Shown: positions 13,110 to 58,381 of the stretch, one piece after another
How positions within the stretch are numbered: position 1 is the stretch's first letter
Layout: every line of letters begins with the position of its first letter
DNA from: Lepidodermella squamata
Taxonomy: Eukaryota > Animalia > Gastrotricha
Direction: 5' to 3'
NCBI GenBank assembly: GCA_047495785.1
Contig: JBLDXI010000001.1
Span: 1,984,001 to 2,048,000, forward strand
Length of the DNA stretch: 64,000 nucleotides
The notes under the pieces: model-generated
What the model saw: only the letters and a program-made list of their open reading frames with translations
The model's database searches: none
Told to the model about the DNA's origin: nothing
Program-made: the position numbers and the translations under genes

Positions 13110-15602
13110 TCAGAGATTAAATTCTCGAACAGTTCGCCCCGGGGTATCAGGTGCCGCAGATCGGCTGATTTTCCTGAACGATGTGATTAGCGGATAAATA
13201 CCAGCAAGGCTTGTCGAATTCCCAAGCACGAGAGCTCCACACGAAATTACTAGGACCTGTAAGGTTGGCTGAGAGACTGGAACAATGAGCATTAGAAAGA
13301 GAACTGTCACGGATATTGTCGCTTGATTCATAAAAGCAACTCGCATGGCAACACATTCTGGCCTTAACGTTTCATCGAAGGTCACATAACGAAGTTGGAT
13401 GGCGAAAAAAACATTAGCAATAAGAATGAGGATGTGATAAATGGCGAGTCCAATTACCCAAAACCATTCATGAGCTGACTCACACGTAAAGTCAACGTAA
13501 ACAAAATAAGCGTCTTGGTTGTAATCGAATGAAACATTTGACTTCTGCCGCGTCATTTTCACTGGATTGACATTAAGCCATATCGCAAGTAACATTGAGG
13601 AGATTGATACGACGCCGAACGCTGCCATTGGTGTAAGGAAATCCATATTCTTTCTTCCAGTGATTGAGACCTTCACAACTTCTTCAACGTTGCCCAACGC
13701 ATGAACGATGGGCCTTAATGAGTTGGACGTTACATCGTGAGGTACCATTCGGCGATGAGGCACAGGTGACCTTGAACCACCAGAGCCGTTGGATGAGACT
13801 GAGTTGACAGTGTTGAATTGACTACGTTGATTGCTGATCAATCTTCGATTCTTCATCTTTACCCTGTAGCTATTTCCAATTATCGCGAAGAAATCTCTCA
13901 TAATTTTGTAGAGAATCGCAGATCTTGAGAATACACAACTGTACTGCAACGAAACGCCAAAAGTCAGAATGATTGCTTTTAACGGGCAGATAATATGTGG
14001 CGATGCCTTTTCGTCCAACGCTAGTAAAATAGCCGCAAGATTGAGGAGTATACCCCCAATGAGCATGGGTGAGTTCTTCGTAATGTACAATTTGTCTCGT
14101 TTGATAACGAGAGAGGCAAACGCAACAATGTGTCCTACTATTCCCATAAAAGAAACAACTGTAATGAGCCAAAACAAGGAGGGTGGAAAGGTGTCTACTA
14201 TAGCTTCAATTTTTGATAGATCCTTCGGGGCTTGACCGTTGTTGCGATGCCAAACAACTGGTGCGAATTCTTCAATGCTGTACGCGTTGTAATCGAAGAT
14301 TCTCGAAGCATTCGATCCCAGATAGGAAATTTTATGAGTAAGTCGCATGGAGTTGTTGATCCACTGGCTTGCGTACTGGGGTTCAAAGTCGTATTCAATT
14401 CGTTCTGAAAACCTCAGCCTGCCAACACGGAGTCCGACGATGTCGAGCTTGGAAGCAGTATCATTTACAACCATCATAACATCCTCAGGTCTGGTCTGAA
14501 AATTTGCAATGGTCATGTTGATTGCATTCAAAGTACTCTCGCTGTTACTCAGAGTCGCCAAGGCCTGCAACATTGTGTCATGGCAACGATGTCTCTGAAT
14601 GTAGTCCGGAGATCGGCTATTGTTAGTCAACTTATCGAGCATAGTTTCAAACTCAGCTAGATCATAGCCGAGAGAAGTTTTTCCTTGGTTCAAATAGGCG
14701 ATCTCAGATGGACCGAGCCAGATTGTCCGCTTAACCTGTTCAGCCATCGAACTTTGCGTACATCCTGGAGGGTACCTGTTTTCAGGCGAGTAAGGATCGA
14801 AAAATACCAGTGGTAGGGCGATGAACAGGTAGTTAGGCCCAGTAGCTCCTCCAAGGTAGGCATAGCAAAGGAAAAGAATCAATCGCGACACTTCCGTAAA
14901 CAAAATTGTGATGATTCTTGTATCTGTTTCGAAAAGAGGCGCAACTGTTTCTGCATTGATGTCGTAAAGGTTTCCAAACCAAGTTACTTCGATCCCAAGT
15001 TTCGTCGCAGCTGAGTAGTAAGCCAAGGCGTTGAGAAACTGATTCGCGTTACCGGCGAAACTCAGAATTCCAAGCTGTTTCCAGGCAGCAACTTTGCGAA
15101 TGAATTGGATTTGAATTAATGGTAGCGAGTCGTAAGAAATTCGATTGCGGTAGAGATTAGGGTAGCTCTTCCTGTTAGCAGTGAACGCAACTCCGCCGCA
15201 ATGAGTGGCAAACTGAACGAAGTTGTTCGCCCGAGCAGATCTGGCCACATGTTGGCACGATAAGAACGTTCCAATGAAAACAGGCGAAACAAGGCTAACA
15301 TTACTTCTTCCAGAATCAATGCCGAAATCTCGAAGGTAGTCAATGAAACCCTTCGGAACGAAGCGCACGACTTCGCCTTCGTCGCGATATACCACGTCGA
15401 TTTTATACCCCGGTATGAATCTTTCGGCATTAGCGTTAAACCAATTGACAGCAACATCCATGGATGCTTGACATATTCTGCCGTCTCGAGGCGCGTTACC
15501 AGTGAAAGGAATGAAAGCTAACATTTTCAGCTCCTTCGCACCTTTCGCATGAAATCCAAGATTCAACAGTATCAAACTTAAGGTTAAAATTGAAGCCATC
15601 AT
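13110..15602 (-). CDS. Divergent class C GPCR, GABA-B receptor-like (Venus-flytrap/ANF-receptor domain + 7TM, no cysteine-rich domain), intronless CDS
   Basis: 830-aa ORF with a signal peptide, VFT motifs (IPGYKIDVVYRD, NRKSYPNLYR, WKQLGIL, TRIITI, GPNYLFI), stalk 'WHRNNGQAPKD' and seven hydrophobic segments including CPLKAIILTFGVSLQYSCVF and IWLNVNP..CES. Minus-strand AATAAA at ~13060. Confidence 0.85.
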   Translation of the reverse strand: MMASILTLSLILLNLGFHAKGAKELKMLAFIPFTGNAPRDGRICQASMDVAVNWFNANAERFIPGYKIDVVYRDEGEVVRFVPKGFIDYLRDFGIDSGRSNVSLVSPVFIGTFLSCQHVARSARANNFVQFATHCGGVAFTANRKSYPNLYRNRISYDSLPLIQIQFIRKVAAWKQLGILSFAGNANQFLNALAYYSAATKLGIEVTWFGNLYDINAETVAPLFETDTRIITILFTEVSRLILFLCYAYLGGATGPNYLFIALPLVFFDPYSPENRYPPGCTQSSMAEQVKRTIWLGPSEIAYLNQGKTSLGYDLAEFETMLDKLTNNSRSPDYIQRHRCHDTMLQALATLSNSESTLNAINMTIANFQTRPEDVMMVVNDTASKLDIVGLRVGRLRFSERIEYDFEPQYASQWINNSMRLTHKISYLGSNASRIFDYNAYSIEEFAPVVWHRNNGQAPKDLSKIEAIVDTFPPSLFWLITVVSFMGIVGHIVAFASLVIKRDKLYITKNSPMLIGGILLNLAAILLALDEKASPHIICPLKAIILTFGVSLQYSCVFSRSAILYKIMRDFFAIIGNSYRVKMKNRRLISNQRSQFNTVNSVSSNGSGGSRSPVPHRRMVPHDVTSNSLRPIVHALGNVEEVVKVSITGRKNMDFLTPMAAFGVVSISSMLLAIWLNVNPVKMTRQKSNVSFDYNQDAYFVYVDFTCESAHEWFWVIGLAIYHILILIANVFFAIQLRYVTFDETLRPECVAMRVAFMNQATISVTVLFLMLIVPVSQPTLQVLVISCGALVLGNSTSLAGIYPLITSFRKISRSAAPDTPGRTVREFNL

Positions 15603-27300: not shown

Positions 27301-30300
27301 AACATTATTTTGAAATGGCAACCGGTTTCGCATAAATGGCGTTCATACACGAAAAATCCCGAGCAATCATTTCTATTTTTACGTTCAATGATCGGACAAC
27401 CCCGGCACTCTTTTGCTCCCCCCGAATGACACCTGGTTTATTTCGTTTGCATTACATTTTTCATTTTAGCCAGCCTTTTCTCGATAATTTCAATACTAAT
27501 TTTTCTTGCTAATTTCGTGGGTTTGTACGGTTTTAATTTTTACACAATTGTTTGGAACACACCAGGACGAATCTCAGTCTACACCCGGTGCTTGCTCTTC
27601 TTCCAATTCTTTGTCGAAAATGGAAACGTCGAGACACTCTCCCTCTCAATTAAAGGTGATAATAGAACGTGTCGCAAAATGCAACAGAATCGCCTGAGTT
27701 GTGCCTATGGATCTTTATTTTTTCGTGCACAAAACCTTGCGAAAAAATATCCTTGCGTGCAATAATGAATTGAAACTAGCCTCAATTTTGACCTGTTCCT
27801 CGCACTACGGACATGCACAAATCCTATCCAGTCTCTGTCCAGAATTAATTGCAAATTTTTACGTTGATTTTTGTTGAAAGCTGCCGCGGAAAGCGATGAA
27901 GTTGCATGCCTGAAGAGCCCGGTTTTTTATCCTTTTAGTTCAATCTCTTACTCGGGTCATTTCGGCGCTGCATCTGTTTACAAAATATGTTGAACAAAAA
28001 TCCGATTGCGACTATTATTATTGGCATTTTTGCAAGCAAAATGTTGCCTGTATCGGTGTTTTGCTGTCGTTGTTATCTGATATCTGATCCAACCATTCGC
28101 CGGGTTTTTAAGTACTAATTATTGTTTATTAATTTCAAATCTGGCGTTGTTTGGAGTTACCGTGTTGTTTACGTTGTGAGATTTCGTCACTAATTCTTGC
28201 TTTCCACACATTTTTACAGACTTTTGGAATGGCGACGCTATTGGTGCTCAACTCAAAATTTCGCCTAGCTAACGCCAATAACGCTAATAATGCGAATAGC
28301 GATCAAGCTAGTGATGGTGACAAGAAGAAAGGTCAGGAAATTTTTTCCTTATTAACTCGGTATCGAAATATTCGGTTTTTGTTTCGTAGAAACTGACGGC
28401 GAGGCGAATGAACCTGCTGCAAGCGAAAAGCCTCCGGAACCCGTCGAGGATAAGACACCGAAAGTCGAGCCTTTAATCGACGCGCCAACGCTGTTTTCTG
28501 GCATTCGCCGGCTCAGCTTATTGATCGAACTCGGCATTCCATCCGCGTTGCCTGAGCCCGGTTTAGTCGCCTCCATGTTAGACCTGAAAGCGCCCGTAAT
28601 ACCTAGGGCGTGTTTCCTGCTCGAATGTGCTGTGGCAATACATACAATCAACAAGCAGCCCAGCCGGCTTGTAGCTCACCTACCGGCTACGGGAAACGCG
28701 GCTGAGACGACCAAGCTGCATTTGCAGACTTTTCGCCAAATGGCGAAGGTATGCCACGGATGGGCGGAAGCGGTTGGCGCGAAACTTGCGAAAGTTATGG
28801 CGAAAGAACTAGCGGCTGGTGCGACTTTTTTACAACCGATCGGCCAAGCAGCTCACCAACATCGAGAGGAGTCTGAGAATTACTTTCTTGATTGTGAGTT
28901 TCGTGTAATTTGAGCCTCGAAAAATCATTATTTTGTAATTTTTTAGCTACTGTGAATAACGAGGACGGTGACGGCTGCCCGCATGCTTTGAAGCGTTTGG
29001 CGTGTATGGTCCTGCTGGAAACGACGATCTTCCTTCGTGAAACGTTTCGCGGTTACACCCGCGAGTTGCTCAACAAGAAACATTTGCCCAGCCATGCCTT
29101 GTCGCCTTTGGCGCCTGTTCCCAGCAGCCAGGACAAAAACCTGCCCTCCGCCTCGCCGAGCGTCGGCAGCCGGCAGCAAGTCGGCATCACGGGTTCGCAC
29201 CACACGGAACCTACGTCGGACTCAGTCTACGGCAGCACGTCAAGTTTGGACCAAGCTCAGCAGAAAGAAATCGAAACCGGTGGTAAGAATAATTCACTAT
29301 GTGACCTATTCACGAGGTTATATTCTATCATTAATTTGCAGCTTCTTCTTCGAAATCTCGAGCGCGAGCTGGGTCTACTGTTCGACGTGCCTCGGTGACT
29401 CAAAAACCGCACCAAGACGCCGGAAAACGTTTCTCTATTCAGCATAGTGATAGTAAGTACTGCCATCTCTCGCTTATAGGAATCACAAGCAGCCCTGAAT
29501 ATAGGATTTTATTTAATTTTTGGCTTAAAAGCCCTTTAAAGATCAATTTCTGTCGATTTTGAAATCGCTAAAACAATTTAAATCACCGAATAGAAAAATT
29601 GCTGGCAATTCGCAATAAATTGCACATCGAAAGGTTTCTCAGGCGTCAGAAAGCTCAGAAATCTTATTTCGAATTATGACGAAATGGCACTTTCTAAAGC
29701 AAATAGTTTACATAAAATGATGGAAAATGCGGCGTACAAAATTTAAGTTTGAAGAGTGAATCAAAATCAGTCGAATTAAGTCACCCTAATCCAATCTAAG
29801 ATCTGAAATTTGAGGCTGCAGTGTTGATATATTGGCTAATTTCGCGCATTTTTTCTAGTTCATGGGTCTTCCTCGTCCCCTCGTCACTCACCTCGACAGC
29901 TTTCAGAAGTAGCACTCGAGTCTCCTAGCCAGCAGTCAGCCGAATTCCCTGGCCCGGAAGCAAGCAATTCAGGCGCCACCGGAGCGCAATCATCGACTCC
30001 ACACCACCAAGGCGCGTCGCAGCAACAGCAAGCTCAAGGTACACAGATCGCCTTTCAACACGACGTTGACGACCAGCAGCTGGTTCGCAACTTCCCGTGG
30101 CTGCGCAGTGTCACCCACCTCGCCGGCTACTATTCATTCGTGTGCCACCACTCGACGGCAAAAGGCGGCCAATGCGCCCAGCTCTGCGTCGAACGGCAAC
30201 GGCGCGACTGCTACCGGCTGATCAGCGCCTTGCATACTGTCTACAAACCGCCGAAATTCTTTTCAAGTGCCGCAACTCGCCATTCATCTACCGTTCACAG

Positions 30301-33300
30301 CTACATCGACCACCGGTGTCGCGGGCTGCTACACGCGCCGTTCAGCACCCTCCTTAAAGCTGCATGTGTTATCGACGACGAAACGTGGCAAGACGCTATG
30401 GGTCCAGCCTGGGAGTTGATCACCGATTCTGACGTCGAACACTCAGCCTCGGCGGCTTGTCTCTTTCTGTTGACAACGCTAAAACTCCACGAAGCATCCT
30501 ACGATCTCATCCAACGCCAGTTGGAACATGCGGAGCCGGTCGAGCGGATAAGCGCGATATATCGTTTCCAACTCATGTGGCAATCGCGGTTTCAAGTTTG
30601 GTCGCGCATGGAGGCTGGAGCTCAAACTCGGTTCAAGGTGCCGCCGCCTAACATCGATTTCGTGCTACCATCGCCTATGGTTGGGTTGTCTATCACCCCT
30701 GTGGTCGATGCGCCCTGGCTGCCGAAAACTGCTAGCCAAATGAGCGATGTGACGACGCTGCATGGCCACGAATCGACCAAGGCGCTGGTAACTGCGACGA
30801 CTACGCATCACAGGCAGCAGATTGAGACACTGAATAAAGCGTTGATGGCTGAGGAGAAGCGGATGCGGAGCGCGAGGGACCAGTACCCGCTAACCTCGAT
30901 GTGTTTGACGGTTTTAACAGCGCAGCAGGAACCCGCACTAGCCAAGGCATCTGCTCAACATGCCCAGGATAAGGAGAAACAGCCTGGAAACGAAGAACCT
31001 GCTGAAGGTATATTTTCTGGAATTTTTCAAATATTTAAGGTTGATGTCAATCGGTTTTATTGATTGAATATTAATCTAAGTTATCGTAAATTTTGGGTAT
31101 ATTAGCCCCGTCGGATGCAACCCCGCCTTATGCTCGTAAAAATGTTGGCATGACTGCTAAACAAGGTTTGTTAGGGCGGCAGTGTGATGACCAGCAACTC
31201 AGACGTCTTTCAATAATTGGCCACCCGCCGTCGCATTGCGACTCGATGTCGTCGGCCTATAATAACCGCCGCCGCAACTCGCTCATACCTAGTACCGGTG
31301 CCGGTGCAAGTGGAGGTCGGCGTGTTAGTATGATACTCACATACAACGCCAGTGGCAATTCTGCTCAGGCTGTAGTTGCTCCTACCGAACCGCCGCCAGG
31401 TAGAACAAACTGCCGCCGCCTTGAAGATTTGCCGCGCTGAGATTTTAGAAATTATATCATTTGCTTGCTGAAAAATAAGTTCTTTGAGTTATATACAACT
31501 ACAAATGCTTGCTGGTTAAAACCTACCTGACGTTAAGTTGGTTATTTGGTTCAATTTGTGTTCAAGGCCCAAGCCCTGCGTCGAGTACAAATATTTTGTC
31601 GGTTCCGTCGGACTCCTCTGTTGAACCGTCTGTGACTCCTACGTTTTCCCAGCGCAGTCAGCCTATCATGACTCTGCGTGCTGCGGGTTGGTTATAAACA
31701 ACTATTAAGGTGGCTTGCTGTCAAAAATTGCGCTTATATAATCGAAAAAAATCGCGCGCTGCTTGCATATTATTTTTTACTTTATTTTGAGCGAATTTTA
31801 TTTTATCGGAAAAGCAGTTCGGCGACTTAGTCGGCATTTCTCGCTGCGAACACCTGTAATATCATTCACGCCCCTTTCATCGGAGTCGACAACGGAATCG
31901 CATGCCTTATTATCTTTTGCGCTCAGTTCCGCAAGTGAATGTAATTTGATTATTTTGGTCATTGTATTTATTATTATTATTATTGGTTTTCACCTGATAT
32001 TCATATTAAGGTGGATTTTTTTAATTTCGGTTTGTAGCAATCTGTGTTTGTTTGTGATTTTAAATTTTTTTCTCTTCTCGATTTAACAGGGGAAGCTCAA
32101 CCTGCTTCTGCGGGTGTAACCGTTGCTCCAACCGGACCATCAGCTATCGCTACCGATGCTAACTGGAACGAACAGTTGAACCGCATCGGAAATGAAGTTG
32201 GCGTTACGACTGCGTCGACCGCCGCGCCGCAACTCGTCACAGTCACGCCTCATTCATTTTACACCCCAGCGGCATGCGCAACAATTGCAAAACTGTTCGA
32301 AATGCTGCTCGACTACGATGTCGGCTTTCCGTCGAATTCTCACCACCATGTCACCCCAACGTCGAATTCGAGCGCTCTTCACGCCATGTCGCACCATTAC
32401 GGCGACTCGGCTCGGTTGGGCGGGTTTGGCCTGACACCTGGCCAAGCGGCTGCCGACGTCATTTGGCACTCGCTGTGCGACGACCCGACCTTGACGCTTC
32501 GATTCTTCTTCGAGCGGCTTACCCACACGGATAAGCTGGACAAATTGCTGCTGTATCTGCGGCATCTAGTCACGCATTTCGGCGGATTCTTACCACCCCA
32601 AGCTGCTCATTCCGTTACAAACTACTTTGTCGGTCTTGTCATGTTCTGTGTTCGAACTTCCTCCGATGAGACGAATGAGACAATTGCGAAGGCGATAGCT
32701 CAATTATCGTTGATTGTTCCGTCTCTAGTCGGGTTTTCTTTCAAAGATTTGAAGCAGTCGCTGCGGAAGGAACAGTGCGATCCGACCCTGATGTTATCGG
32801 CCGGTGTTCCGGGTGCGAAGAAACTCGTCATTCACGGGCCGGATCTCAGCTCCATTCCATCTCAGTTCCCTGTCGGCGATGACACGCAATTCAGCAGCTT
32901 GTTGACAGAATCTCTCGATTTTTTCAACATCGAACAAGACAGGCGGCATCTTTACTATCTAGTCGACACCAAAACGAAACACATCTACCTGCCATCGAGT
33001 TACGTTCGAGATTTCTACCCATTTCGGCGTAATGTCTACCCGCAATTGAGCCTCGTTCAAATGAGGCCTGATTTAGCGGGCGATAAAATGCGGCAGCAAA
33101 CGCTGGTTTTGAAATTTGCTGATATAAATCGGACAATTTTCAATGACGCTTGCCTCCACGTTCTGTCATCGACCGCCGCGCCTGGGCAGGTTTTCTTCAT
33201 CCACGATGAATTCATCCGACTGCCGACCTTTCCGCGCAAGGCGCTACAGTTCGACCATGTCGAGCTGGTCAGCGGGTCTGAAACAGCTTGGCTCGCGAAA

Positions 33301-36300
33301 CAGCTGCATAAAATGGATGTTTTACACAAAACCACGTGGATAGACTTTTTATCCGCGTTTTTGTGCCGACTCCAGCCGTCGATTCCGATCGTATTCGACC
33401 TGCCGTTGTACCTATCGGTCATCACCGGATCGATGGTACTTCACACGGATGAAACAACCGCAGTTCTACGGCGAAGTTTAGCGCTTATTGTCAACCTGGC
33501 GCGGCATTATCGCACGTTTTTCGCAACCGAGGGCTACACGTTCGTCTGCCCGACAATTTTCCAAATCTATTCCTGCTACGCTGGCGTTCATTCCGAATCG
33601 GTTCAAACCGGTATTGAATACGCGTGCAAGCAAATGTACATCATCCACCGTAAGCCGTTCCTGCTTCAACTGATGGGCAGCGTTGCTGAACTGTTCATCG
33701 CCTCGCCTTCTGCTCATTACGGTAAACATTTGTGCACGCTGTTGGCTCAAATCGGGGCGACGCCGAATGATGCGTTGAACATTATGGAGCTGGTCAGTGA
33801 GCCGAAACCGTTGAAGACGCTCGATTTCTGCTACGAGGACGAAGACCCAACTTTTCACTTGATCGACTGCATTCGGCTGGCGATTGCTGTCATCGCGTAT
33901 GGCGGTGATTCGCCGAGATCATCGCGGATGTTAGTCATTCTAGACGCTGTTCTACCGCAATGTGTCCAGTCGCTGGTCCAAGTTCACGCGGTTGGATCGC
34001 CAAACACCGGGAATCTGCTGCATAGCCATATAACAGGCGGTGCTAATTCTGGGCATAGTCGAAAAATGCAGAGTGGCCGTGACGAGGCGACTGCGATCAG
34101 TGAACTAGCGACGTGTATGAAAGCTCTCGTTTCCGCGTGTACGTTTTTAACGAAAGGCTACGCGGCTAGTGAGCGTCAACTCGAGTCGACCGGCCTTGCG
34201 TTTTACATGCGGCATGGCAGGAGGGCGGCGAGGGGCCTCCAGGCCGCGGCTGATGCCGATCTCGATTTTGTGGAGCGTGGCGCGGAAGATGCGGGCCAAA
34301 ACATGACGGCTCTGAGGGACTTTCGCCTACCTCGCGACTGTGTGCTATCAATCATGGCCTCGTTTTTCCCACCCTGCGTCGCCCGCCTTAAAGAACTCCA
34401 CAAAACTGGGCTGTCATCAGGCGGTGCTGCGAATGCTGGCGATCAGCAATCATCGCGAGGTACCAGTGGAATTCACGAGCTGTTATCAGCTCGAGATCAC
34501 ATTCGACTAGCCGAAATCGCGCAGACTCTGCTGAAAGTCGCGCCCTACGACCCGCCTAGCATGAACTGCGTAGGCCTCGAACGGTATATGGTCGACGTTT
34601 TACCGGCTACGAATTGGGCCCAAGAATCGACCCGGCCGGCTTTTGCGTTGATTCTCCGCCGGTTAGACCGACTATTCGCGAGGCTGGTCAAAAAGGCGTC
34701 GCTACGGCAATGTTTAGACTGGTCCGCAGCAGCCGCCTTAATAACCGGCGTTTCATCGACGCTACATCAGTCGATGTATCTAGCCCATGTGAAGGAGATC
34801 AAATCACTGATAACATCGTGTCTAAACATCATCCTAGCCGACCCTAGTGAGTTTTCTACCGGCTCTAAGACTGAGGCTCGAACTGGGTCTATCTCGGCGC
34901 CGGATGATGACGAAATCGACGGTGAGAACCGGCCGCCAGCTCCATCGTCCGCTGCTTTCCTCTTCGCTGTCGTGCGACTTCTGGCGACTGAAATGCAAGC
35001 TCAAGGCGAGTTGTACGGCTTATCAAGCGTATGCGAACCGCTGATTGGCCAGTCGCTCAGCGCCGCTCCACCTGAAAAAATTCATTCCCTGATTCTATCA
35101 GTTTTGATGCCGTTACTACTCTCGTCATCTGTCTCCACCAAAACCGCGTTTGTTATGCGCAGAGCTGATATCTCTCACATTTTGTCACTGTTACTGCACC
35201 TGGCCAGCCCGCCGCATCGCCAGGCGTTGACTGCGAATTCCGCGGCCTACGTCGGCATGGGCGGCGGGTCCGGCGGCGGGACTGGTTTCAGCAACTCGGC
35301 AGCCATCGCCGCGGCTCGAATCACGAACCTGAGCCGAAGTGGGACCAATCAATCGAACATGCTATCAGCGGCGCTATCAGCATCGGCGAATGTTAAGGAG
35401 CATCGCGGCGCAACTTCAGCAATGACAGCTTTCCTCATCGAACACGAACGTGCGACTACAGCCGCGGCGGCCGAGGCCAGCATAGCCGGGCAGCATCAGT
35501 GGGCCCGGGAGAACTACCTAGCCACGGTTTTTCTCGGCCTAAAGCTGCTTTGCCTGAGATTTGACGCCGAACTCGCGAGTCAATGGCCGCTTGTGGCGAA
35601 ACATTGCCGCGGCCTGGCGTTGCGACCAATCGCCAGCCCGTCGCTGTGGCGGTTTCTTGGCTTTCTCGCCGCGGCCCGGCCGTCGCTTTTCGCCCTCTTA
35701 GCGCCTTTCATCCGCTGGAAGTTGAGCCGGTTAAAGCTCAGCGACCTCTCCCCAGCTGATAGCCAGCTTCAAAGCGAGGTTATACAGAACGTGCTAGCCC
35801 CGGGCCCGCCATTGCCTCGAGCTCAGTTGTTACTAGCCTGCGCTGAGGAGCTGCGAATTTTGCGGCGGAATGCTGCCATTGTCTCAACGGCGAATGAAGC
35901 CCAGCAGAAAACTGTGCGAGGCGTTGCTGGCCAGTCGTCGACATCGCCGGCCGGCGGCGAGTCCGATGCCATCCCTCTGCAGGTCTTGGCGAGGAGAACG
36001 TCTTCAGCTGTCGCCGCTCCGATAGTTGCGAATCGCGTCATTCACCGCTCATCGACGGCTACCACCTTCCAGAGCGAGCAGACGAGCACGCCTCGCAGCT
36101 CGACTGCAGTGCCGGAAGACCTGCAAGCTGCTCTACGACAACCAGGCATGGGTAAGTACTGATTTCCCGTTTTAATTAGGCTATTTTCAATCAGTTGAAT
36201 TCAAAATTGACGGATCTTTCCTTTCCAAGTTAGTATTTTTTGATGATCACAAAACTGAGTGGAATTTTCTCCTTTTTTCTCTATTTTTGGCGACATGGTT

Positions 36301-45850: not shown

Positions 45851-48800
45851 TCACAGCATCAGACTGCGCTCGGTTTTCCCGCTCCGGCTGAAACTGTCGG
45901 TGCGGTGCCACGACGCGCTACTAGTCGCTGCTGTTATGTTCCGCCGGTCGAGTAGCAGCATTTCACTACTCTCGTCGACCGTTTTCAGGTCGCGGCTTTG
46001 TTGCACCGGGAAGGCGTCGAAGAAATTCTCGTCCGCCTCGTCGTCCTCATCGTCGCCGATGAGAACCGCTGAACCGTGGATGGCTAGTGTCGCCGCAGGC
46101 TTCCGCTCGCTTCGAATCACCTTCGCCCCACCATTGTCATCGAATATGTCGTCTGAAACAGAGATATTTAGTACATGGATTGATAAAGAAACCATTAAAT
46201 TTCTCGTCAAAGTCAAAGAAATTTTCTAGATTGCAATTTAGAGCACGGCATGATAAATTATTCCAAAATTCCAATGGGATTTTAAAAAAGTTCCTCCTTA
46301 ATTTTAATCAATTATTCAAAGAGTCAAACCGCTTGTTTTGCCCTCAAAAGGAATTTTTTCTATACATTCGTCAAATGAACGGTAAACAATATGACAGCTG
46401 ATTCAAAGCAAAACAATCTGCCTGTTTTATTCATTTGGAAGCTAGAAGGTCGTTAATTAGCTGATAAAAATGATAAAATGAGCTATTCCATTGTTTACAG
46501 TGCACTTGAGATGCTTTGAGAAACGTTTATTAAGGGTAAAACAAGCTACACCTACTGGGCTTCAAGTTTTGAAATTTTAAAAGAGATAAATTGAAATTCA
46601 GAAGTTGCGCACGGATATGAGTTCACCGAGTATTAACTACAAATATCTCACACGCGCTTTCACTAATTTTAGCCCCAAGTTCGAGTTCGAATAAATCACA
46701 AATATAAAGTAAAACTCGGAGAATTTTAATGGGTTTGAAAACACGAATATTCATGAGGTGCCAATTAAAATTCAGATGCAATTAGGCGAGCAAAATAGTA
46801 AGAAAAATTTGGAGCAATTCTTGGAATTCATCCTGACATATAGCTCACTTGTCATTTTTTGTCTGATTTTTTAGCGCTGATAGTTTCAAGATCCCCATAA
46901 ATACATTCATAATCCTGAAAATATCCTACTTTCATCCCGAGCTATTTTTAGGGCCGGTGAAAAGTGCATAAATCTTGTCCGTTTTTGACCGAAAATAAAC
47001 CATCATCTCGCACTAGCGCACAATTTTAACGAGATTCAAATCCTCTCCACTGAGCGGTTCTGTTGAATCTCCCTGTATTCTATTTTATGTTAGTCAAATG
47101 ACTTAAAATCATTCAGATTTGAGATGATAACAAGAAGGAAGAGTGAATAACATACATAGCACTGCTTTGGTTTGAGCAGCGTCTGAAGTTTTACTGCCAA
47201 TTGATTTTCCACTAGCACTGGACCCAGTTCCACTGCGCCGTGCAGCGTCAATCAGCGGGCTGGGGGTAGATTCATGCGTAACTGTGCCATTGCCCATCGG
47301 CAACAGCCGAACAGCCTCGTGTCGCCTCGCCTCCATCATTTCAGTCTCATCCTCGGCACCGTCATTATCGTAACCAAGCCGCTTACTGCCACCTCGAGGG
47401 TACGGCGAATACGAACTATCCTGGCCGTTCAAGGCCAGATTTTGAAGCAAAACAAATAGCACGGCGAGCAGCAGAGACAGTGCCGCCATGAGGTACGTCA
47501 GAGATTGCGGGTTCCTCACGAAAAAAAATCCGGCAAGAACAGGTAGAACCATTTCGCCACACGCAGCCCCAGCCACCAAAACCGCCGAAATTTTACCAGT
47601 TACCGGCATATAGCGTTCAGTCCACAGAAAACCACTCGCGAAAATCGACGACATGCCTAGACCAGCGATGGCTGAGCAAATCCATAACGCAGCATCGAAC
47701 GACTGGGCCCCAATCAACAGGCCTAACATCGCAACTGTTAACAGTGTCAGATTAATTGCGATCATCGAAGCTGGCCTAAGGTGCTTAGTTAACGGAATAG
47801 CGATACCCCGGCCTGCTGCTAGCGCGCCCCAGAATGCAGACGCGGCATACGCAGCGTCCTGCCTACTCCACTTTTGCGCCCGTTCTGCATACGCCGAGAT
47901 GAACTGGCCAAACGCAACCTCGCCGCCAACGTACAAAAAGTAGAAAATGAACAGCAGAACTAGCAGCTGAATATGAAAACCCGACGGGCACATTGACGTT
48001 TCGGCACGCGACCTCGGTTGTAACAGCTCTTCGTCCGGTTTCAGGTCATCCGGGGTCGTTGCGCCTGGTTCTGCCTCGAACAGTCCGTTTTCAGCGCTGC
48101 TTTCAATCAGCGCCATTCGATCGGCGCACGGCAATTTCAGCCGTTCAGAAGCACCGACCAGCAGAAACCCGGCAGCGATTATGCCAAGAATGATCGCAAC
48201 TATCATATACGCGATATGAACCCTAGAAACGCCACCGCCTTGAAGTACAGGGGCTAAATCCGGGTCCAGTACTGTCGTGGTAGTCGTTTTAGGTGCGGTT
48301 GTGGTCGATGTAGTTGAGCTGGTCGTAGTATTCGGGGTAGTTTGCTGAACAGCCGGGGTTGTAGGCTGTGGATTAACTGGTTTGACCGGTATTACCGGGG
48401 CGACCGTTGAAGGACTGGTCGTAGTAGAAGTTGTAGTCGGTGTCGTACTCGGCGCCGGAGTAGTCGATGTTGAAGTAGTCGTGGAACTAACTATTGACAA
48501 CGTAGTACCAGCATTTACGACAGGAATTGCGGGTTTTAAGGTGGTTGTAGTTGAATTGCTATCGAGTTCGACTGAGCTTGAATTGGAATTGCTTATAGTT
48601 GAGTTTCCCAAATCAATGGCCACAGTCGAAGTTGTGGATGAGCTAGACGAAGCAGGTGTAGGTGGCGCCTCGGCAGGTTTCTCAACAACAGTTTGGTCGC
48701 CTTTCGAGATCTGGTCCTTCTTCAAAGCTCCTTCATTCTTGCTACTGTCAGCCGACTAAAAAAACACATGAAAATTTGAAACTAAAAGCGAAGTATTACT

Positions 48801-50147
48801 TACAGATTGACTTTGGTCCGGGAGAAGAGATCCATCGTTCAAAACCGGTTTATGCCTGGCAGTGGTCGATCCAGTGCCATTAGTCGTAGTACTCAACGGA
48901 CTTGATGCAGTCGATAAAACAGTGGAAGGTGGAATTGTGCTCGATGTAGAAACCGGACTCTCGGTCACCAAAACCGTCAAATTCGCCGCGTTTGGTGGGT
49001 TTGCAGTGGTGGAAGTATTTGAATCAATTTCCCTCGGTGTAGGTGTAATAGGCGATATAGATGTAGTGCTAGTACTTGAAGTTGTAGCTGTAGTTGTAGT
49101 TGGAGTCACTGAAATTATGTCAACTGTGCTAGGCAATTTGACTGTAGTCGTCACGACAACTTCAAGTTTTTCGATATTCAACTGAGTAGGAGGTGAAAAA
49201 GTCGTAGACGGCAACTCAGGCAGCGACATTGCTCTTTTCGTGTCCAAAGTCGGATCGCTTGTTATTAAATTTTCGGAATATTGAAGATCGTAGTTCAAAG
49301 GCGATTCTATATCTCGTCTGCGCCTCGAGAGAATTTCGATGCTGTGATGAGACACGTTTTGATCCAGGGCAACTAAAGACGGTGAGGTGACAGAGGGTGA
49401 GACTGAAAGAAAAGGTTCGGCGATCAACGGCGCCAGGAAAGCACCAAGTCCGAAAGCGAAATGCAGCCCTTGCAAATAGGGCGCGCTCGATTTGCCCCAC
49501 AGGCGAAGTAGCAACACGTTGCCGCCCGTGTCCAGCATACCCATCGCGAAGCCCTGCACGCCAATGAGAACGATAGCGAGGACTAGCGTTGTTGCCCATG
49601 GAAACACCAGCGTTGCAGCGCCGGTGCTCAGCAGTGAGAAGCCGAGTAGCAGCATTTGGTTCATGCGGTCGAATAGAACGCCGCCGATTAGGGAGCCGGA
49701 CAAGTAACCAACCGATCGCCCGGCGAATAGGTACGACATTTGGTCCGTAGTGGACCTGGTCTGAGCTTCCAGATCGAGCAGAGTCGGGCCCGGTAACGCT
49801 ATGCATAAACCCTGAAAAATAACGGAAAGTTATACAAGGAGGACTAAAGACCAAATAAATCTTACCAGGCCAAGAAAAGCTGAAAAAAGTAGGAAGCTGC
49901 GGTACATTTTGCCAGAATTTGACATCTTTTTCGCTAAATTTCCGAAAGCATTGAATTGCGGCCGTTTCGACGTAATCGGAGTCGGTGAAGTTTTCGCTTT
50001 TGACCGCGTTCGATCGCGCTTGAATAAGGTGAGTTCGCCATTACCCGGCGCTCCGTTGCCTCGACCAGGGCTGCTGAAAAGCTCCTGCTCCTCGTCTTCG
50101 GCGTCGGAACCGTGGAGCAAGGCCCCGCCAGCTTCAGCACGAGCCAT
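45851..50147 (-). CDS. MFS transporter, MFSD4/sodium-dependent glucose transporter 1-like, with a very large S/T-rich loop
   Basis: Exons 50147-49866, 49811-48804, 48755-47156 and 46152-45851 join in frame. MFSD4-type motifs: GLCIALPGPTLLDL, GGVLFDR, MGMLDTGGNVLL..LWG, QGLHFAFGLGAFLAP, FLYVGGEVAFGQF, SAFWG..AAGRG, GMSSIF, GEMVLP. Confidence 0.9.
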
Positions 50148-50689: not shown

Positions 50690-52834
50690 CTAAACGCGGG
50701 AAAATATAAGAGCTAGGCAGAGCAATGCTACAGTGACGAGAGAATGGCAACAACGATTTGAGGCGGCGTTCAGCGGGAAGTAGTACGCCAACAATTGATA
50801 GGGATTGCGGCCGATATCGTACCGCTGAGGACACTCGTCGTCTATAAAATGAAAATATGAATTTTAAAAATAAAAATAACGACTGAAGAGCTTACGCATT
50901 CGCTCGTTTTCGTCGAGGTACAAATGAATACTCGCGCCATCCTCAGTTTCAACAGATTGAGCCGATTGCCTGAAGCCGCAGGCAGAACGAAGAGATCTGG
51001 ACAAGTGAAATTGTCGATAATCTTTCTGCTCGTAAACCCAACAACGGAAGGGCGAAATCGAGTCATCTTTTTCATAAGTAATCATGTATGACTTGATGTC
51101 TTCCATCCAATAACCGACGCAGACAAGTTCGTTATCCGGGATATCGTACTCTCCGATAGGACGAGCGTGATAGTCCATGGTCATGCAACGTTCCGTATCA
51201 ACTCTTATGACCTTTGTGTCACGGCAGATGGCGAAATCCGTTTCGACATCGTCCTTGCGGCACAAAACTTGCATACGAGGAATGTCAGTGATACCTCGGA
51301 AACGGGTGCGGAAAGGCTCCTGGCCAGACTGGTTAAACTTGTAACGACCTGCAATCGGGCATTCAATCGGAACTGGTGGGTACATCAAGAAAGTGCGGTA
51401 TTTCCACTCATAATCATCGGGCCGGGTGTTGAAAGAGACCCAGGCGCAGGTACGTCTGAAGCGCATCTCCATGTAGTCAACGCCCATCGCTAACTGTTCT
51501 GACTCCAAAAATCGGAAAGGCTTACTCAAACGGAATCGAATGACATTTTGATGCCGAGGCAAGAAATCGAAGCAGATAAAATCGACTTCGCAAACTCCAA
51601 GAGTAACTGCTACTAACAAATAGCGAGACTCAGAATGCTGCTGGCAGATGTAGTAAGTATCCTTCAGAGTATATTGGTCGATTTTAGTGTGGAAATGAAT
51701 ATGGGTAGCATTGATTGTAACGACTGAGTCACGCTCACCCGATGTATACCAGACACCGGTAAAATTCGCAGGGAAACGGCAGTGAGGAGTAATGATTGAA
51801 GTTGTAGGTACTTTCGGTGTCAAAACCAGGGTATAATGACCACCGTAAATGTCTGGCAACTCCTGGCATGAGGCAATACGTGACATGGACCAACGTTTCT
51901 TATTCAATCCGAGTTGCTGAATTCGGCTGGTGATCAAACAGCGGAAAGCGAATTTGTCTTCTCTTTCTCCTAGATCCCAAATAGCGGCGTAAACCTTATC
52001 ACCGCCGCCCTCCCACGCTCCAAGACATTTGAACTGTTGTTCCTTTGACATTGATCCTTTCAAATCAGGGCACTCTCCCCATTTCATTTGTACCAACTCG
52101 TTACCGACGTGAGGTGTACCAGGATCGTAGCATCCTCGGATTTCACTTTGCGGTGAATCACAAACACCGGCAACACCCTTCATTTCATAAGTGAAGTGGT
52201 ATACACCCCACCAAGTTTGCGTGCAGTCTACTTTCCGGTATTCTTTGGCAAATAGCGTCGTGTAATCAAAATCATTAAGAGTCATAGGGCAGATATCTCC
52301 GAAAGAGGGCAATGCTCCAGGAGGCGGAGAAGTGCAGCCCCCGCCATCTCTGAACTGCACAATATTAGGGGTGCGGTAGTAGAACTGCATACATCGATAG
52401 CAGTCTTTACCACTACAAATAAATTGTATCATTAACAGATTTTTCTCAAGTTCACGAGGGCTTACGGATCATGCAGCAATATTTTCATGCTGTCGCCGCT
52501 CTGAATAGATGGAGTAATATTTGACAGCTCCAACTTGTAACACTCGCCTTTGAATTTTCCAGCATCAGACTGTCCGACTCCGAATTGAATGGAGTAATCA
52601 AATATATCATGGTATTGATAATCACCCTGACCAGTCAACGAGAACCATCTTCCACGGTAAGCTTCAGGAATGGGTGTACCCGAGATTGCACAGCTGATAG
52701 ACGAAGACGACTGAGGATCTGTATTCAAAATAAGCACTGAAAATCTCGAAATTTAGTAAGGCAAAAACACTACCTTGCAGTACCGCACTGTGGAAAAATG
52801 AGATAGCAACCAATATAAGCGATGGTTTCAACAT
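50690..52834 (-). CDS. Secreted, probably GPI-anchored cysteine-containing protein of a conserved uncharacterised invertebrate family (resembles DUF7042/DUF7043/DUF7044 architecture)
   Basis: Exons 52834-52774 (signal peptide MLKPSLILVAISFFHSAVLQ), 52718-52466, 52412-50896 and 50841-50690. Repeated C-x-G-x-W...Y...FRC modules, CRFPANFTGVW, CPIAGRYKF, CVGYWMEDIKSYMITY, ENERMHDECP, and a C-terminal NAAS plus hydrophobic tail. The domain names are from memory and need an HMM check. Confidence 0.8.
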
Positions 52835-53241: not shown

Positions 53242-55528
53242 ACTTGCGAAACTGAAAAGCGCTCTTTAGAGAACTGCATGCTGCGGCATGCTGCAATGCG
53301 TTAAAAAGGCCAAGAAAAGGGGACTGCATGCGTCTGAAAATCTGAAATTCGTGATGCAGGGAATTTTCAGTCTGCAGTCTTCAGGTGATCTGATCTGGCC
53401 AACCGAGAGCGGAACGCCGAACGACTTCCTACCAACGACAGGATACAACCACCGACTCACGAACTTGAAAACTCAAACGTCGACAGATGAATCATAATTA
53501 AAATTTCATTTAGAATGAAAAATGCAATTTAAATGACCACATCGAAGCAATAAATAATTCGCGTCAATATATTCCGGAGGGAAATTTTAAAAACTCTTAG
53601 CAACGCGTCGCCCTCACCATTGGAATTGGCCCGAAATGATTTTGACACTATCTGGATCGCTTTGATCACTTTTATAGAAGATCACTTTGTCACTATCTGG
53701 GATCAACACAACCTTATTTTATTTGTGGCCTATCTATCTTCCTAAAAAAGAGCGATTCGTCACTCGTCACTATTCAAACAGCTATTGTCTCTTTTGAAAT
53801 GGGATTTGTCACTATCGAGTACCGCAAATTGTGGATAAGTACTGTTTTTGCCGTTAAAGGGATACGGGCTATGGACCAGGTCTTTGGGCAGTGAGATCAG
53901 TTTCAAATGCCGAAATAGATGACAAATGGATGAGTCTCCAATGGCGATCTCCGAAAATCAGGTACAAATAATCCTGGATTTGATTTTCGCTATCGTCCAA
54001 ACATTGTTTCAACTCGCGCCCGATTTCTAACATTTCTATTTTAAGCGAATTCGGTCACCCGTTTGCATGAGGGTAATTTCACATTTGGACGCAGTAGCTA
54101 ATAGCTAAACACAGGTCTCACAATATCCACACTAATATTTTCATCTAACCACTAACGACATGGCAGCTGTGCTCACCTCAATATGTTTTGGAGACGCAGG
54201 AGCTGGCGCTATATTTTTCTAAGTCTTTCTTCGTAGCTATTAATGAATATAGCATCCTCTAGGAAAAGGAATTTCTCCAATTTTGATGCGATCTTCATGT
54301 CGGAGTCGACAAAGCAATTGCAAGCCGCTTGGCGCAATCTGACTCACCGCTCTCTTTTTTTATGAGTTGTCGTTCGCCTCCTGTTTGAAGGGTAATAAGG
54401 CTGTGAATGTCTCCATAAAATAGCAGTTAAAAGTTGACCTTGCCGTCCTTTGCTTTTAAAATTTGCCATTATTGTTTATTTGTTCGTGGATGTTCATTGT
54501 ATCAAGCGACGCATTGACATTGAAGTTGCATATCTAATTGTGCTGGCGTTGTTTCTGTGGCTCAACCCCTATTTATGGCAGTTACATTTATTCTATCCAC
54601 ATCATTAGCATTGCGGAAGGCTGAACGTCAAACTTGAGAGCTTGATAATACGTATACTAAAAATCATGAAATGAAGGTAAATGCACTTTCAAATTCGGTT
54701 TCACCTGTGCATTTGTACAGTAAGAGAGCCGTCAATACTGCAGCTAAATTGATGATTAATCATGGCAACAATTTAACTAGTTGAGCATTCTGTAAACAGT
54801 TCTTTCTCTCTTCTACTTGATGGATAGAGGTAGCAATGAAAGAAAGAAATGCTTGATCGGCAATCGAATAAAAATAGGCAGATTATTCGGGCCATCGACC
54901 ACTAGGTTATCTCCGCCGCTCAATTGCAGTTCTTACGTTTTTGCTATTCGTCGCAACATTTTGCAATGAAAACATATAGGCTTGTGGCTAATTTGCTTCA
55001 CCGTTATATTTTACTGCGCTTTTTCGAAGTTTTCCCTGCATGGCGATCGCACAGTTGACAGAAAGCAATCATAATTAATTTTGCTGGCCGGCATAACACA
55101 GATTATAATTAAAGCTTTCTTTAACTGCTCACCTTCCTTTCTTCTCCCTCACCTGTAAGAATATAGCTTTCTTACAGCTAATGCGGATGATTAAATTATG
55201 CACACGTATTTTGGAATTAATCACAGTCACAGATTACCCGTCTTACGAGGAATATTGCCTGGATGTAAGAATTCCTTATTTTTTTCGCAAAGAAAACGTC
55301 AAGTCGAGATTAGGAAATTCCTCTTTCTCTACGCCTTTCCTTGTAGAAACTCGCACTGAACATTTTTAATTAAAAACATCCAGTTTCGCGATGACTGTGT
55401 CCGAAAGAAGCGGCATTATATGAAGCTAAATTAATTTAAGATACTTGTTTGTCGCGGAAAAAAACGCGACTCAGTTCGAACTTGTTCATGGTTTTGGTCG
55501 ATCGCTGATTCCCAACGCTTGAACAGTC

Positions 55529-57900
55529 ATGGCTACCAGTATGAAAGGGGGCTCCACGTTTGGGGGCCGCAGTGTTTCCAGCACCGCCTCCTTATACGAG
55601 TCCGTTCGCGAACAATTTGCCCTTCACCGCCCATACCAACAGCCGTTCTACATTTTGTTGACCTCGGTTGTGCTATTACTGCTAGCAGCTGCAATTCGAA
55701 GCGCTATCGTTCTTAGCGATGTGTACAACTCTAAACTCCTCGTCACAGCACAAGCGACAAGTGCTATAGAAACGATGACAGCGATCGAGCAAGCCGTTGA
55801 AGTACTTTACCAAGAATTGCATTCAAGAATACCCTATCTCACCCGAAAAGAACCTCAATTAAAAGCTGAGCTGAACACTCGGCAAGCTAATGTTGATACG
55901 GTAAGTTTTGATTTGCTATCGCGATCTCCAGCTATCATTCGCTATATTTCAGTATTTTGCGCAACAAAATGACAAATTCAACTCGCTTTATTACCGAGTT
56001 CCCGAATACAAGCAATACAAGTGTGCGCTGAACATGATCAGATCGAACAACGATGACAGGCCTGATCCGGTTCGGTTATTCAGCTACCGGTCCTTGGAAG
56101 AATTGTCATTGAATGGTTAGTTACAAAGCAAAGATTTCTTTTATAAAACCAATTTACATTGCAATTTTAGCTTGGAATGACACTCGATTTTATCAGTGTC
56201 TTGTTGAGTTCACTCTCGACGTCCACCAGCATGTTGTCGCTACAGCTGGTGGTTTCGAGCTGATTTGGAGCGAAGCCGTTGGCTTTCACCTGGCTCTTAG
56301 AAGCTTCTTCTATTTCCGCATGGCAGTCGATTACGCATACGTAGCTCGTGAAACAGGTACTAGGGCGATTTTCAACAAGATTGGAACTCAGGATTCATTT
56401 ATTATTTAAATTTCAGGGCTGAAATTCAATCGTCGCGATTATGACAATGCCGATGATCGCGCTGCTATAAGTGACGCTGTTTCTTTGGCGCAGAACTATT
56501 TTTACTCCGCAAAGAGCATCATCGACCCGAGTTATGCTCCCGATTTGGCGGCTGCTAACGATGCCTTGATGAGCTTGAGCGCGAGATTCCAGTCACGAGA
56601 CAACATCACAGCCGCAGCATTGCTCATCGACTCGGAGAAATGCAAGTTTCGCTCATTGCCTATGGATTTTTTTTGAAATTAGCATCTTCTAGTTGAAATG
56701 TCATCTGCTGCTCGTGACGTTTACCAAAAAATGTTGGTTGGCGTTAATCAGTATCGGGCCGCCTTGACTAATCGGCATAATAACGCAGTTAAAAAGGCCT
56801 GGGATGAACTTGTCGGAGGTAATTTTTTTCTGGTGATTTTCAAGTAGTCTTGATCTGTTTTTTTTCCAGAAATTGTGAAGCTTATCCTCCTCGTCATTGT
56901 TCTCCCATTGCTGTTTGCTCGAGGCCTGTATCAAATTCAAAACGAGAATGTCCGCTTGCATTCTCGATACGATACCACCGTCACTAAATTTGAGGATGCG
57001 TCAAAGGTTGCCTTTCTCGGCTGCTCCAGAACCGATTTTTAATTTGATTTTTTCAAGGCTATCTTCCGACTTCTGCCCGAAAGTGTTGCGCGAAAGCTAA
57101 ACTTGGGCCTGGGTGTTAAACCAGAATTTTTCCATAACGTCACCGTGTTTTTCTCTGATATTGTCGGTTTTACGACTATCTGCGCAAAACTGAGCGCCAT
57201 CGAAGTTTTGGCTATGCTAAATCACATTTACACGATTTTCGACTCGCAGACCAAAGTTCACAAATGCTACAAGGTTGAAACCATCGGCGACGCCTACGTC
57301 GTAGCAAGCGGTGTTCCAGTGCGCAATAACACCCATTCTGCCGAGATTGCGGCTTTAGCGCTCGTTCTAGTCGAAGAGGTCGGAATGATTCGAGTGCAGC
57401 GTAGCAATCAGCGCATCCAGATTCGAGTGGGCCTTAACAGCGGTAAGATTTTAAACTCGCTATTAGAATTTGTCCCAATAGTCGCTTAATTTAGGCCCGG
57501 TTATGGCTGGCATCGTCGGTTCGAAAATGCTCCGATACTGCTTGTTCGGTAAAACTGTTCTCTACGCCAACAAGATGGAGCAAACTTCAAAGCGTAAATT
57601 CCCTATTTCCTTGATATTCCAGCAGTAGATAACTGCGATTTTTTTGCAGCTCAACGAATTCAAGTTAGCGCCACGTGTTATAAAGAGCTGGTGGAACAGG
57701 GTGGGTTCCTACTTCAAGCTCGTCCGGCTGGAGAATTCTCGGTAAGTCCTGACTGCACCAAGCAGCTTCGATGCCCAACTTCTTTTATTTTCTAGGACCC
57801 AACTTGGTGGCTGGACGGACGTGTCACTTCGAGCCAGATGTTGGCTCTCTTCGGCGCAGAAGATTCTAACATCCTAACATCTCGCGTTGACCTGCTATAA
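55529..57900 (+). CDS. Membrane guanylyl cyclase-family protein with two TM helices flanking a NIT-like helical sensor domain (NIT-GC-like); catalytically incomplete
   Basis: About 10 exons. TM1 [20 protein letters not shown]-like [23 protein letters not shown]2 [16 protein letters not shown], then [59 protein letters not shown]. Stop TAA at 57898-57900 abuts AATAAA. The cyclase call is secure; the NIT call is by motif memory. Confidence 0.88.
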
Positions 57901-58381
57901 ATAAAATGACAAAAAATATGAATAATATATAGTTGGAGTTTCTATCTGTCTTGAAATGTTTGAAAACTGAAGTGATGAAATATATTTTTTTCGAAATTTT
58001 CGTTTCTCTGTTAGTCTGGCTAAATGTTATTCGGTGGATAAACTATTTTTTATCATAGCTTATAGGCTACTCAATGTTAAACCACTCAATATTAGCCTCC
58101 TTAATTGTTGTGAAAGACGTATAATTACGATTGTTTGATGAATAATTGAATGTAAATCTCGCCAAAAGACCTCATTGTAATTTATGATGCGTAAATAACC
58201 TAATAAACCAATCTCTGAAATGTAAATTTCCAAGCTGAAATCCAAGGAACGCATTTTTATTTCAAAACAAAAATAATGTGACAATAGTGTTTTAGCAAAA
58301 CGGTACTTTATAACGAAATCGAGGTCCAAAATTATAGTTTCGAGGCAGTACATGAATAGATTGGCACAGCAAATAGAATTC

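Follow-up and report, generated by a model that had tools for sequence, protein, structure and literature searches.

The window analysed here comprises 64,000 nucleotides of the genome of the gastrotrich Lepidodermella squamata (contig JBLDXI010000001.1, positions 1,984,001 to 2,048,000) and carries, at 55529-57900 on its forward strand, a gene for a membrane-bound cyclase in which the metal-binding half of the catalytic site is kept and the half that supplies the catalytic Asn, Arg and Lys is degraded. This half-site cyclase gene is intact, spliced and transcribed, and it is under purifying selection. In what we regard as the best reading, and to which we give about even chances taken as a whole, its product is a two-pass membrane receptor of the architectural type of the NIT-domain guanylyl cyclases (NIT-GCs) and would make cyclic GMP (cGMP) only when paired with a complete cyclase, in the manner of the alpha subunit of soluble guanylyl cyclase (sGC). 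As a description, such an alpha-like reading, which had already been put forward in a first-pass annotation of the same DNA, has good support; as a mechanism it is plausible.

One half of the active site is kept and the other is degraded

The cyclase domain of the window protein was aligned with 105 other complete cyclase domains, 77 of which carry the canonical guanylyl cyclase (GC) signature and served as the reference. Both metal-binding aspartates, D437 and D481, are present in the spliced reading frame (the D437 column is Asp in 100% of the canonical domains), and the same is true of E477 and C547, the Glu and Cys that specify guanine. The columns of the catalytic Asn and Arg, each 100% conserved in the 77 reference domains, are occupied in the window protein by Leu554 and Lys558, and the β7-β8 hairpin is four residues short of the canonical length and devoid of KGKG, the joint 57741>57796 that lies within it having been seen in spliced contigs. 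On all these residues, coordinates included, the first-pass annotation had been correct. Fifty of the 75 columns that are conserved at ≥90% in the canonical domains are kept in all five alignable members of the gene family described below, while 10 of the approximately 13 non-conservative changes fall in helix α4 (residues 551-561) and in the hairpin (residues 590-597). This clustering speaks against chance decay and for a selective pattern, which the first-pass annotation had also suspected. When the Protein Data Bank (PDB) was searched with exon 8, the best match was sGC alpha; its residues at the two transition-state positions are Thr and Lys, and it has the ANK motif in common with the window protein.

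The earlier reasoning was that one protomer of a class III cyclase supplies the Asp pair and the other Asn, Arg and the KGKG Lys, and that all three of the latter are altered here. This holds for Asn, Arg and KGKG, and it needs correction in one respect, namely that Glu and Cys belong to that half as well. Because the guanine-specifying Glu and Cys come from that same protomer, the Asn/Arg/Lys half is best described as degraded and not as erased. Its state is the one seen in sGC alpha and in NeoR, a subunit of a chytrid rhodopsin-GC, which makes a nucleotide-binding but non-catalytic site plausible.

The gene is transcribed and evolves under constraint

Contigs of two public sequencing runs, X1 and X2, were aligned with positions 55400-58000. 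Those of X1, a run recorded only as 'RNA?', skip all nine introns, each 51-60 bases long, at the predicted GT..AG sites (one of them GC..AG), and since they are without any intron they are transcript-derived; those of X2 represent unspliced DNA across the same stretch. Owing to the spliced X1 contigs, the exon borders near the critical motifs (57442/57495, 57593/57650 and 57741/57796) are observed and need not be predicted. Among the findings that, by the first-pass annotation, would speak against it are restored motifs in cDNA and a silent gene or pseudogene, and neither was made: the spliced message restores no canonical motif, the junction in the KGKG loop included; the gene is transcribed; and it does not behave as a pseudogene. 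All 14 coding single-nucleotide polymorphisms (SNPs) that distinguish the X1 and X2 alleles from the window are synonymous, every one at a third codon position, and against the orthologue introduced below, with synonymous divergence (dS) saturated, the non-synonymous divergence (dN) amounts to 0.13 for the cyclase domain and to 0.43 for the ectodomain.

Two details of the transcript may be added. One X1 contig aligns with the window from 55481 on, and its first 30 letters match nothing in the stretch; they could be a trans-spliced leader or a mere assembly end. The single GC-AG intron stands in the same codon phase in the orthologue (L001 4078-4138), and two paralogues have GT at that place.

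The half-site state is shared by a family of genes

A HMMER search with exon 7 returned short metagenomic open reading frames (ORFs) at 61-63% identity and, library-wide, no annotated close relative. A word-index protein search with P0004, a database fragment, likewise turned up no annotated relative of full length, all its matches being metagenomic fragments of the family. On the metagenomic contigs from which the ORFs derive, five related genes were modelled from the same conserved intron positions. One of these, L001_A, is the orthologue of the window gene, with 66.6% identity over 628 aligned positions, the same intron positions, the change from Asn to Leu and the loss of the hairpin; the other four are paralogues. 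All six members keep the two Asp, the Glu, the Arg and the Cys, and all six have Leu at the Asn position and lack the KGKG hairpin, while the Arg position is occupied by Lys in the window gene, by Arg in four relatives and by Val in one. The paralogues are approximately 50% diverged from one another and nevertheless retain the metal Asp pair, Glu, Arg545 and Cys, and that the Asp pair has been kept across such divergence argues that it is still used. In a tree of cyclase domains the six group together with an SH-aLRT value of 100, and the stem of their clade measures 1.39 changes per column, a length which implies that the retained residues survived much change elsewhere. Judged by this comparison, the half-site state is old, shared and maintained.

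In the metagenomic relative, the orthologue is arranged head-to-tail with paralogue B (L001 3020-7910), and paralogues D and C adjoin each other (L005 1-6121). The cyclase gene of the window is a singleton, unlike these neighbouring copies. A run of 48 bases (30 upstream bases and the codons for DERTMD) occurs twice on contig L004, at 274-321 and 5007-5054, where the second exon borders of paralogues D and C lie, which suggests that the ectodomain has recently undergone duplication or gene conversion.

The architecture is that of a NIT-GC and the ectodomain is remote

From the N- to the C-terminus, the window protein consists of a cytosolic segment of 38 residues, a first transmembrane segment (TM1), an outer domain of approximately 295 residues, a second transmembrane segment (TM2), a helix of 34 residues and a class III cyclase domain, the start of which is marked by a conserved LLP motif. 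In a Pfam scan of the single exons of the gene only PF00211 was matched, by exon 7 (6.2e-32) and exon 8 (1e-8), and no kinase-homology domain was found. The closest PDB matches of exon 7 were GC-A (8.5e-30), GC-C and sGC alpha (7e-25). The same kind of search gave no match for exon 9 and chance matches only for the last exon of the orthologue; the C-terminal part of the cyclase domain is strongly diverged.

NIT-type GCs were described recently in placozoans and many invertebrates, and in Platynereis they are sensors of nitric oxide (NO) or its derivatives. The proteins of Trichoplax and the NIT-GC1 and NIT-GC2 of Platynereis are composed of a transmembrane segment, a helical ectodomain, a second transmembrane segment and a cyclase domain, with no kinase-homology domain (PMC7400543). 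The topology of the window protein matches this order, its length of 629 residues compares with 603-655 residues for bona fide NIT-GCs, and its juxtamembrane helix of 34 residues has the modal NIT-GC length, which was found in 8 of the 14 measurable NIT-positive proteins. The NIT-type label of the first-pass annotation therefore fits in architecture and in linker length. It does not fit by the Pfam profile that had been proposed as the check, PF08376, which matched none of the exon-level pieces of six family members and gave nothing on the window exons, on the database fragments P0003 and P0004, or on eight ectodomain pieces of the relatives at E-values up to 10.

Other comparisons gave signals that are weak and remote. 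A hidden Markov model (HMM) built from 11 NIT-GC ectodomains scores the half-site family at no more than 6 bits, and hhalign aligned the family with NIT-GC ectodomains over 135 collinear columns with P = 1.3e-3 and a probability of 18% (0.1 in the reversed control). When an HMM of the family ectodomain was run against 270 proteins, the top eight non-family matches were all NIT-positive GCs (E = 8e-4 to 1), and all eight matched in one collinear region. A search with a protein language model, for which the first exon of a paralogue served as query, placed the sequence nearest to the TarH, 4HB_MCP and CHASE3 clusters, which are bacterial four-helix-bundle sensors. In the cyclase tree the half-site family comes out as the sister group of all membrane GCs at a weakly supported node (74), and the NIT-GCs themselves are not recovered there as one group. 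We consider the ectodomain to be a sensor of the helical-bundle type, possibly a far-diverged NIT domain, with the NIT identity of the window gene weakly supported by these profile comparisons. The Arg of the first NIT-GC motif (Q-x-E-R) is without a counterpart in the hhalign columns, and for this reason the ligand of NIT-GCs should not be assumed for the window protein; an Arg conserved in the family stands three columns later.

A putative heterodimer and its precedents

A homodimer of the window protein would carry two sites, each of which would be without Asn, Arg and KGKG, so that it should be inactive or nearly so. Most probably, the signalling helix and the cyclase interface would bring the protein together with a receptor cyclase that is complete, and it would donate its Asp pair to a single catalytic site completed by that cyclase. 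Because the helix of 34 residues has the modal NIT-GC length, pairing in register is geometrically possible. The degraded half of the window protein would then contribute to a second, non-catalytic pocket, which may still bind nucleotide and regulate activity. R545, the phosphate-binding Arg, and the guanine-recognising pair E477 and C547 are kept. The structure of the gene, its transcription, the selection on it and the conserved residue pattern are observed here, and homodimer inactivity, heterodimer formation, partner and ligand are inferred.

The scheme has precedents. The sGC alpha subunit functions only as a heterodimer (PMC5225109), and sGC alpha1 and alpha3 have, like the window protein, the Asp pair, KVETIGDAY, RYCLFG, a residue other than Asn (Thr) together with Lys, and ANK. 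In contrast to the two-pass membrane receptor of the window, sGC alpha is soluble and has H-NOX-like, PAS and coiled-coil domains, and since the window cyclase domain does not group with the sGCs in the tree the resemblance is convergent. NeoR has Thr455 and Lys459 with the Asp pair and Glu/Cys kept; it shows no activity by itself but becomes active together with RGC1 or RGC2, and in the heterodimer it gives the Asp pair to the single catalytic site, the second site being regulatory (PMC12264004). Like the window protein, NeoR joins a membrane sensor by a helix to a cyclase domain that has lost the Asn/Arg pair and kept the Asp pair. It is, however, a fungal protein with a rhodopsin sensor, its half-site state has no common origin with that of the window gene, and of the two only NeoR has a known partner.

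Among animal receptor GCs, to which the window protein also belongs, ODR-1 and DAF-11 of Caenorhabditis elegans form an obligate heterodimer, to whose single site both chains contribute essential residues (PMC5225109); unlike the window protein they are single-pass, have a kinase-homology domain and another ectodomain, and belong to another lineage. In adenylyl cyclase, C1 donates the two metal Asp and C2 gives Asn, Arg and Lys, the degenerate second site being regulatory (PMC12264004). C1 is thus the Asp-pair half, as the window protein would be, but C1 and C2 lie on one polypeptide with a 12-transmembrane architecture and the product is an adenylyl, not a guanylyl, cyclase. Finally, Platynereis NIT-GC1 shares its architecture with the window protein and differs from it in that the latter is without Asn, Arg and KGKG; the cyclase domain of NIT-GC1 is described as highly conserved, and the protein, expressed on its own, produces cGMP in the presence of an NO donor. 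Among NIT-GCs, cGMP production that depends on NO, nitrite or nitrate is known for NIT-GC1 only. The half-site principle is accordingly known from other cyclases, and the finding at this locus alone is incremental. The idea of heterodimeric specialisation, which the first-pass annotation had considered new, is new for NIT-type GCs only, obligate heterodimeric receptor GCs being already known from ODR-1/DAF-11.

Observations that weigh against pairing and the alternatives

Several observations weigh against the heterodimer. No partner subunit was identified, and no second cyclase was found in the 64,000-nt window. The neighbouring paralogues of the metagenomic relative (A with B, D with C) are all of the half-site type, and hence tandem neighbours are not complementary. 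The complementary type that the first-pass annotation had expected, in which the Asp residues are lost and Asn, Arg and Lys kept, was not seen among the 106 complete-domain cyclases tabulated of the approximately 270 sampled, with the sole exception of an unrelated protein of 1473 residues that is without the Asp and keeps Asn and Arg; such a type is not needed if the partner is a complete cyclase. Furthermore, four of the six family members retain the Arg, and most carry a basic residue, Lys or Arg, at 551, which lies one turn ahead of the lost Asn, as might be expected of a rewired site.

The last point bears on the possibility that the protein is active as a homodimer, its site being weak or rewired in such a way that Lys551, Lys558 or other residues stand in for Asn, Arg and Lys; cyclase activity would then be low or differently regulated and would need no partner. 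All six members have at least one basic residue at 551 or 558, in the same helix as the lost Asn, and the guanine Glu and Cys are retained; some bacterial class III cyclases without the Asn-Arg pair keep low activity. We nonetheless hold a rewired homodimer to be unlikely. The Asn is invariant in the 77 canonical GC domains, and the hairpin with its phosphate-binding Lys is deleted and not merely substituted. The Arg of the Asn-Arg motif is described as crucial for stabilisation of the transition state (PMC12264004, citing Yan et al. 1997), and NeoR-cat, with Thr and Lys at the two positions, has no activity of its own (PMC12264004).

It is rather less doubtful, though still improbable in our estimation, that the protein is a non-catalytic pseudo-cyclase receptor whose cyclase domain serves only as a dimerisation or scaffold module, or else a regulatory or dominant-negative subunit by which complete cyclases are made less active, without ever taking part in catalysis itself. 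Loss or alteration of the Asn, Arg and KGKG elements would be expected of such a protein, and the expansion of the family, with neighbours all of the same half-site type, and its long stem branch are in keeping with it. A structural role would not require the two metal Asp, Glu, Arg545 and Cys, however, and these are kept by six of six members in spite of the divergence of the paralogues; NeoR, moreover, has the same pattern and contributes to catalysis. For the view that the gene is a pseudogene in decay, or an artefact of annotation, nothing speaks beyond the lost catalytic residues. With a 629-codon frame that is intact, nine of nine introns spliced, 14 synonymous SNPs to no non-synonymous one and a full-length orthologue, we rejected this explanation as extremely improbable. 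Keeping these alternatives in mind, we prefer the alpha-like heterodimer, a proposal that is directly testable with the cell assay published for NIT-GC1.

NIT-GCs with altered catalytic residues in other phyla

The sample contains 15 proteins in which a complete cyclase domain is combined with a clearly recognisable NIT ectodomain; it is a small sample, collected with an alpha-like query, so that the proportions within it are no census. All 15 keep the two Asp, Glu, Arg and Cys, and in eight of them, from other phyla, Asn and/or Arg is replaced. These eight come from Saccoglossus, Glandiceps (two), mussels (two near-identical proteins, one of them from Mytilus edulis), Tubulanus, Priapulus and Dimorphilus; the altered public-proteome proteins include P0066, P0076, P0165, P0062, P0059 and P0201 (Saccoglossus, Glandiceps, Mytilus, Tubulanus, Priapulus and Dimorphilus). 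In two further sampled NIT-GCs the sole deviation concerns either the Lys of the hairpin or the Asp of FGD. On the evidence of these alignments, alpha-like NIT-GCs are not peculiar to the genome of Lepidodermella squamata, and the altered proteins of several phyla could be a family-wide alpha-like class. The Platynereis paper and the placozoan paper on NIT-GCs make no mention of cyclase heterodimers, subunit asymmetry or altered catalytic residues.

Taking together the clade of the window gene, with at least six members, and the half-site NIT-GCs of hemichordates, molluscs, a nemertean, a priapulid and an annelid, we tentatively raise a broader possibility, which we think falls clearly short of even chances: NIT-type cyclases may commonly be asymmetric heterodimers of alpha-like 'sensor' subunits with a few complete catalytic subunits, acting as combinatorial chemosensors. 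Each receptor would then have one catalytic and one regulatory nucleotide site, in a logic like that of the co-receptors in other sensory receptor families. Should the half-site clade indeed pair with complete cyclases, signalling by NIT-GCs would be combinatorial, with a regulatory pseudo-site as in sGC and NeoR/RGC. The many half-site NIT-GCs that public proteomes contain in other phyla would be in line with this, and expression maps and knock-downs of single NIT-GC genes would be read differently.

Features of the gene and its surroundings

The coordinates of the half-site cyclase gene and of the elements of its product are collected in Table 1. An Rfam scan of the window gave no matches. 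Two ORFs for UNC80, a subunit of the NALCN channel complex, lie at 30140-36162 on the forward strand, one of 307 residues (30140-31063), which corresponds to the central region, and one of 1372 residues (32044-36162), which is uninterrupted and matches UNC80_C at 6e-268; the best matches of this UNC80 are to molluscs and arthropods (34-37% identity), with 30-31% identity to proteins of a rotifer and a nematode. Directly upstream of the cyclase gene and on the other strand is an ORF of 522 residues with DUF7042, DUF7043, DUF7044 and DUF7045 (50864-52432). The reverse strand also carries, at 13110-15602 and 47109-49739, an ORF of 830 residues that matches class C G-protein-coupled receptors (7tm_3) and two adjacent ORFs that match MFS transporters.

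Table 1. Positions in the window of the half-site cyclase gene, its exons and the segments and motifs of the encoded protein (aa, amino acid residues)
Feature	Position	Strand	Remarks
Whole coding gene	55529-57900	+	10 exons, 629 aa, stop codon 57898-57900; frame analysis and spliced contigs
Exons 1-5	55529-55900, 55953-56115, 56171-56356, 56417-56641, 56693-56818	+	
Exons 6-10	56870-57006, 57058-57442, 57495-57593, 57650-57741, 57796-57900	+	
TM1, approximately aa 39-62	55643-55714	+	Kyte-Doolittle 19-residue windows >1.6 from aa 37-48 onward
Outer (ecto) domain, approximately aa 63-357, exons 1-5	55715-56817	+	helical-bundle sensor type, possibly a far-diverged NIT domain
GC-AG intron, donor GCAAGT	56642-56692	+	spliced joint 56641>56693; at this position orthologue L001_A likewise uses a GC donor
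TM2, approximately aa 358-378	56870-56931	+	hydropathy
Juxtamembrane signalling helix, 34 residues, end of TM2 to LLP motif	56932-57072	+	spans intron 57007-57057
Class III cyclase catalytic domain, aa 404-601, exons 7-10	57058-57813	+	PF00211 and PDB matches
FSDIVGF, with D437, first metal-binding Asp (kept)	57151-57171; D437 57157-57159	+	column 100% Asp in 77 canonical GC domains
KVETIGDAY, with E477 (guanine-specifying) and D481 (second metal Asp), kept	57271-57297; E477-D481 57277-57291	+	
RYCLF, with R545 and C547 (kept)	57533-57547; R545-C547 57533-57541	+	
Segment of 13 residues with K551, L554 (Asn position) and K558 (Arg position)	57545-57583	+	
Helix α4	57551-57574	+	K551 for the invariant FGD Asp, L554 for the catalytic Asn, K558 for the catalytic Arg
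Shortened β7-β8 hairpin, RPAGEFS/DPTWWL	57721-57741 and 57796-57813	+	split by intron 57742-57795; no KGKG
AATAAA, overlapping the stop codon	57900-57905	+	likely polyadenylation signal, read from sequence alone

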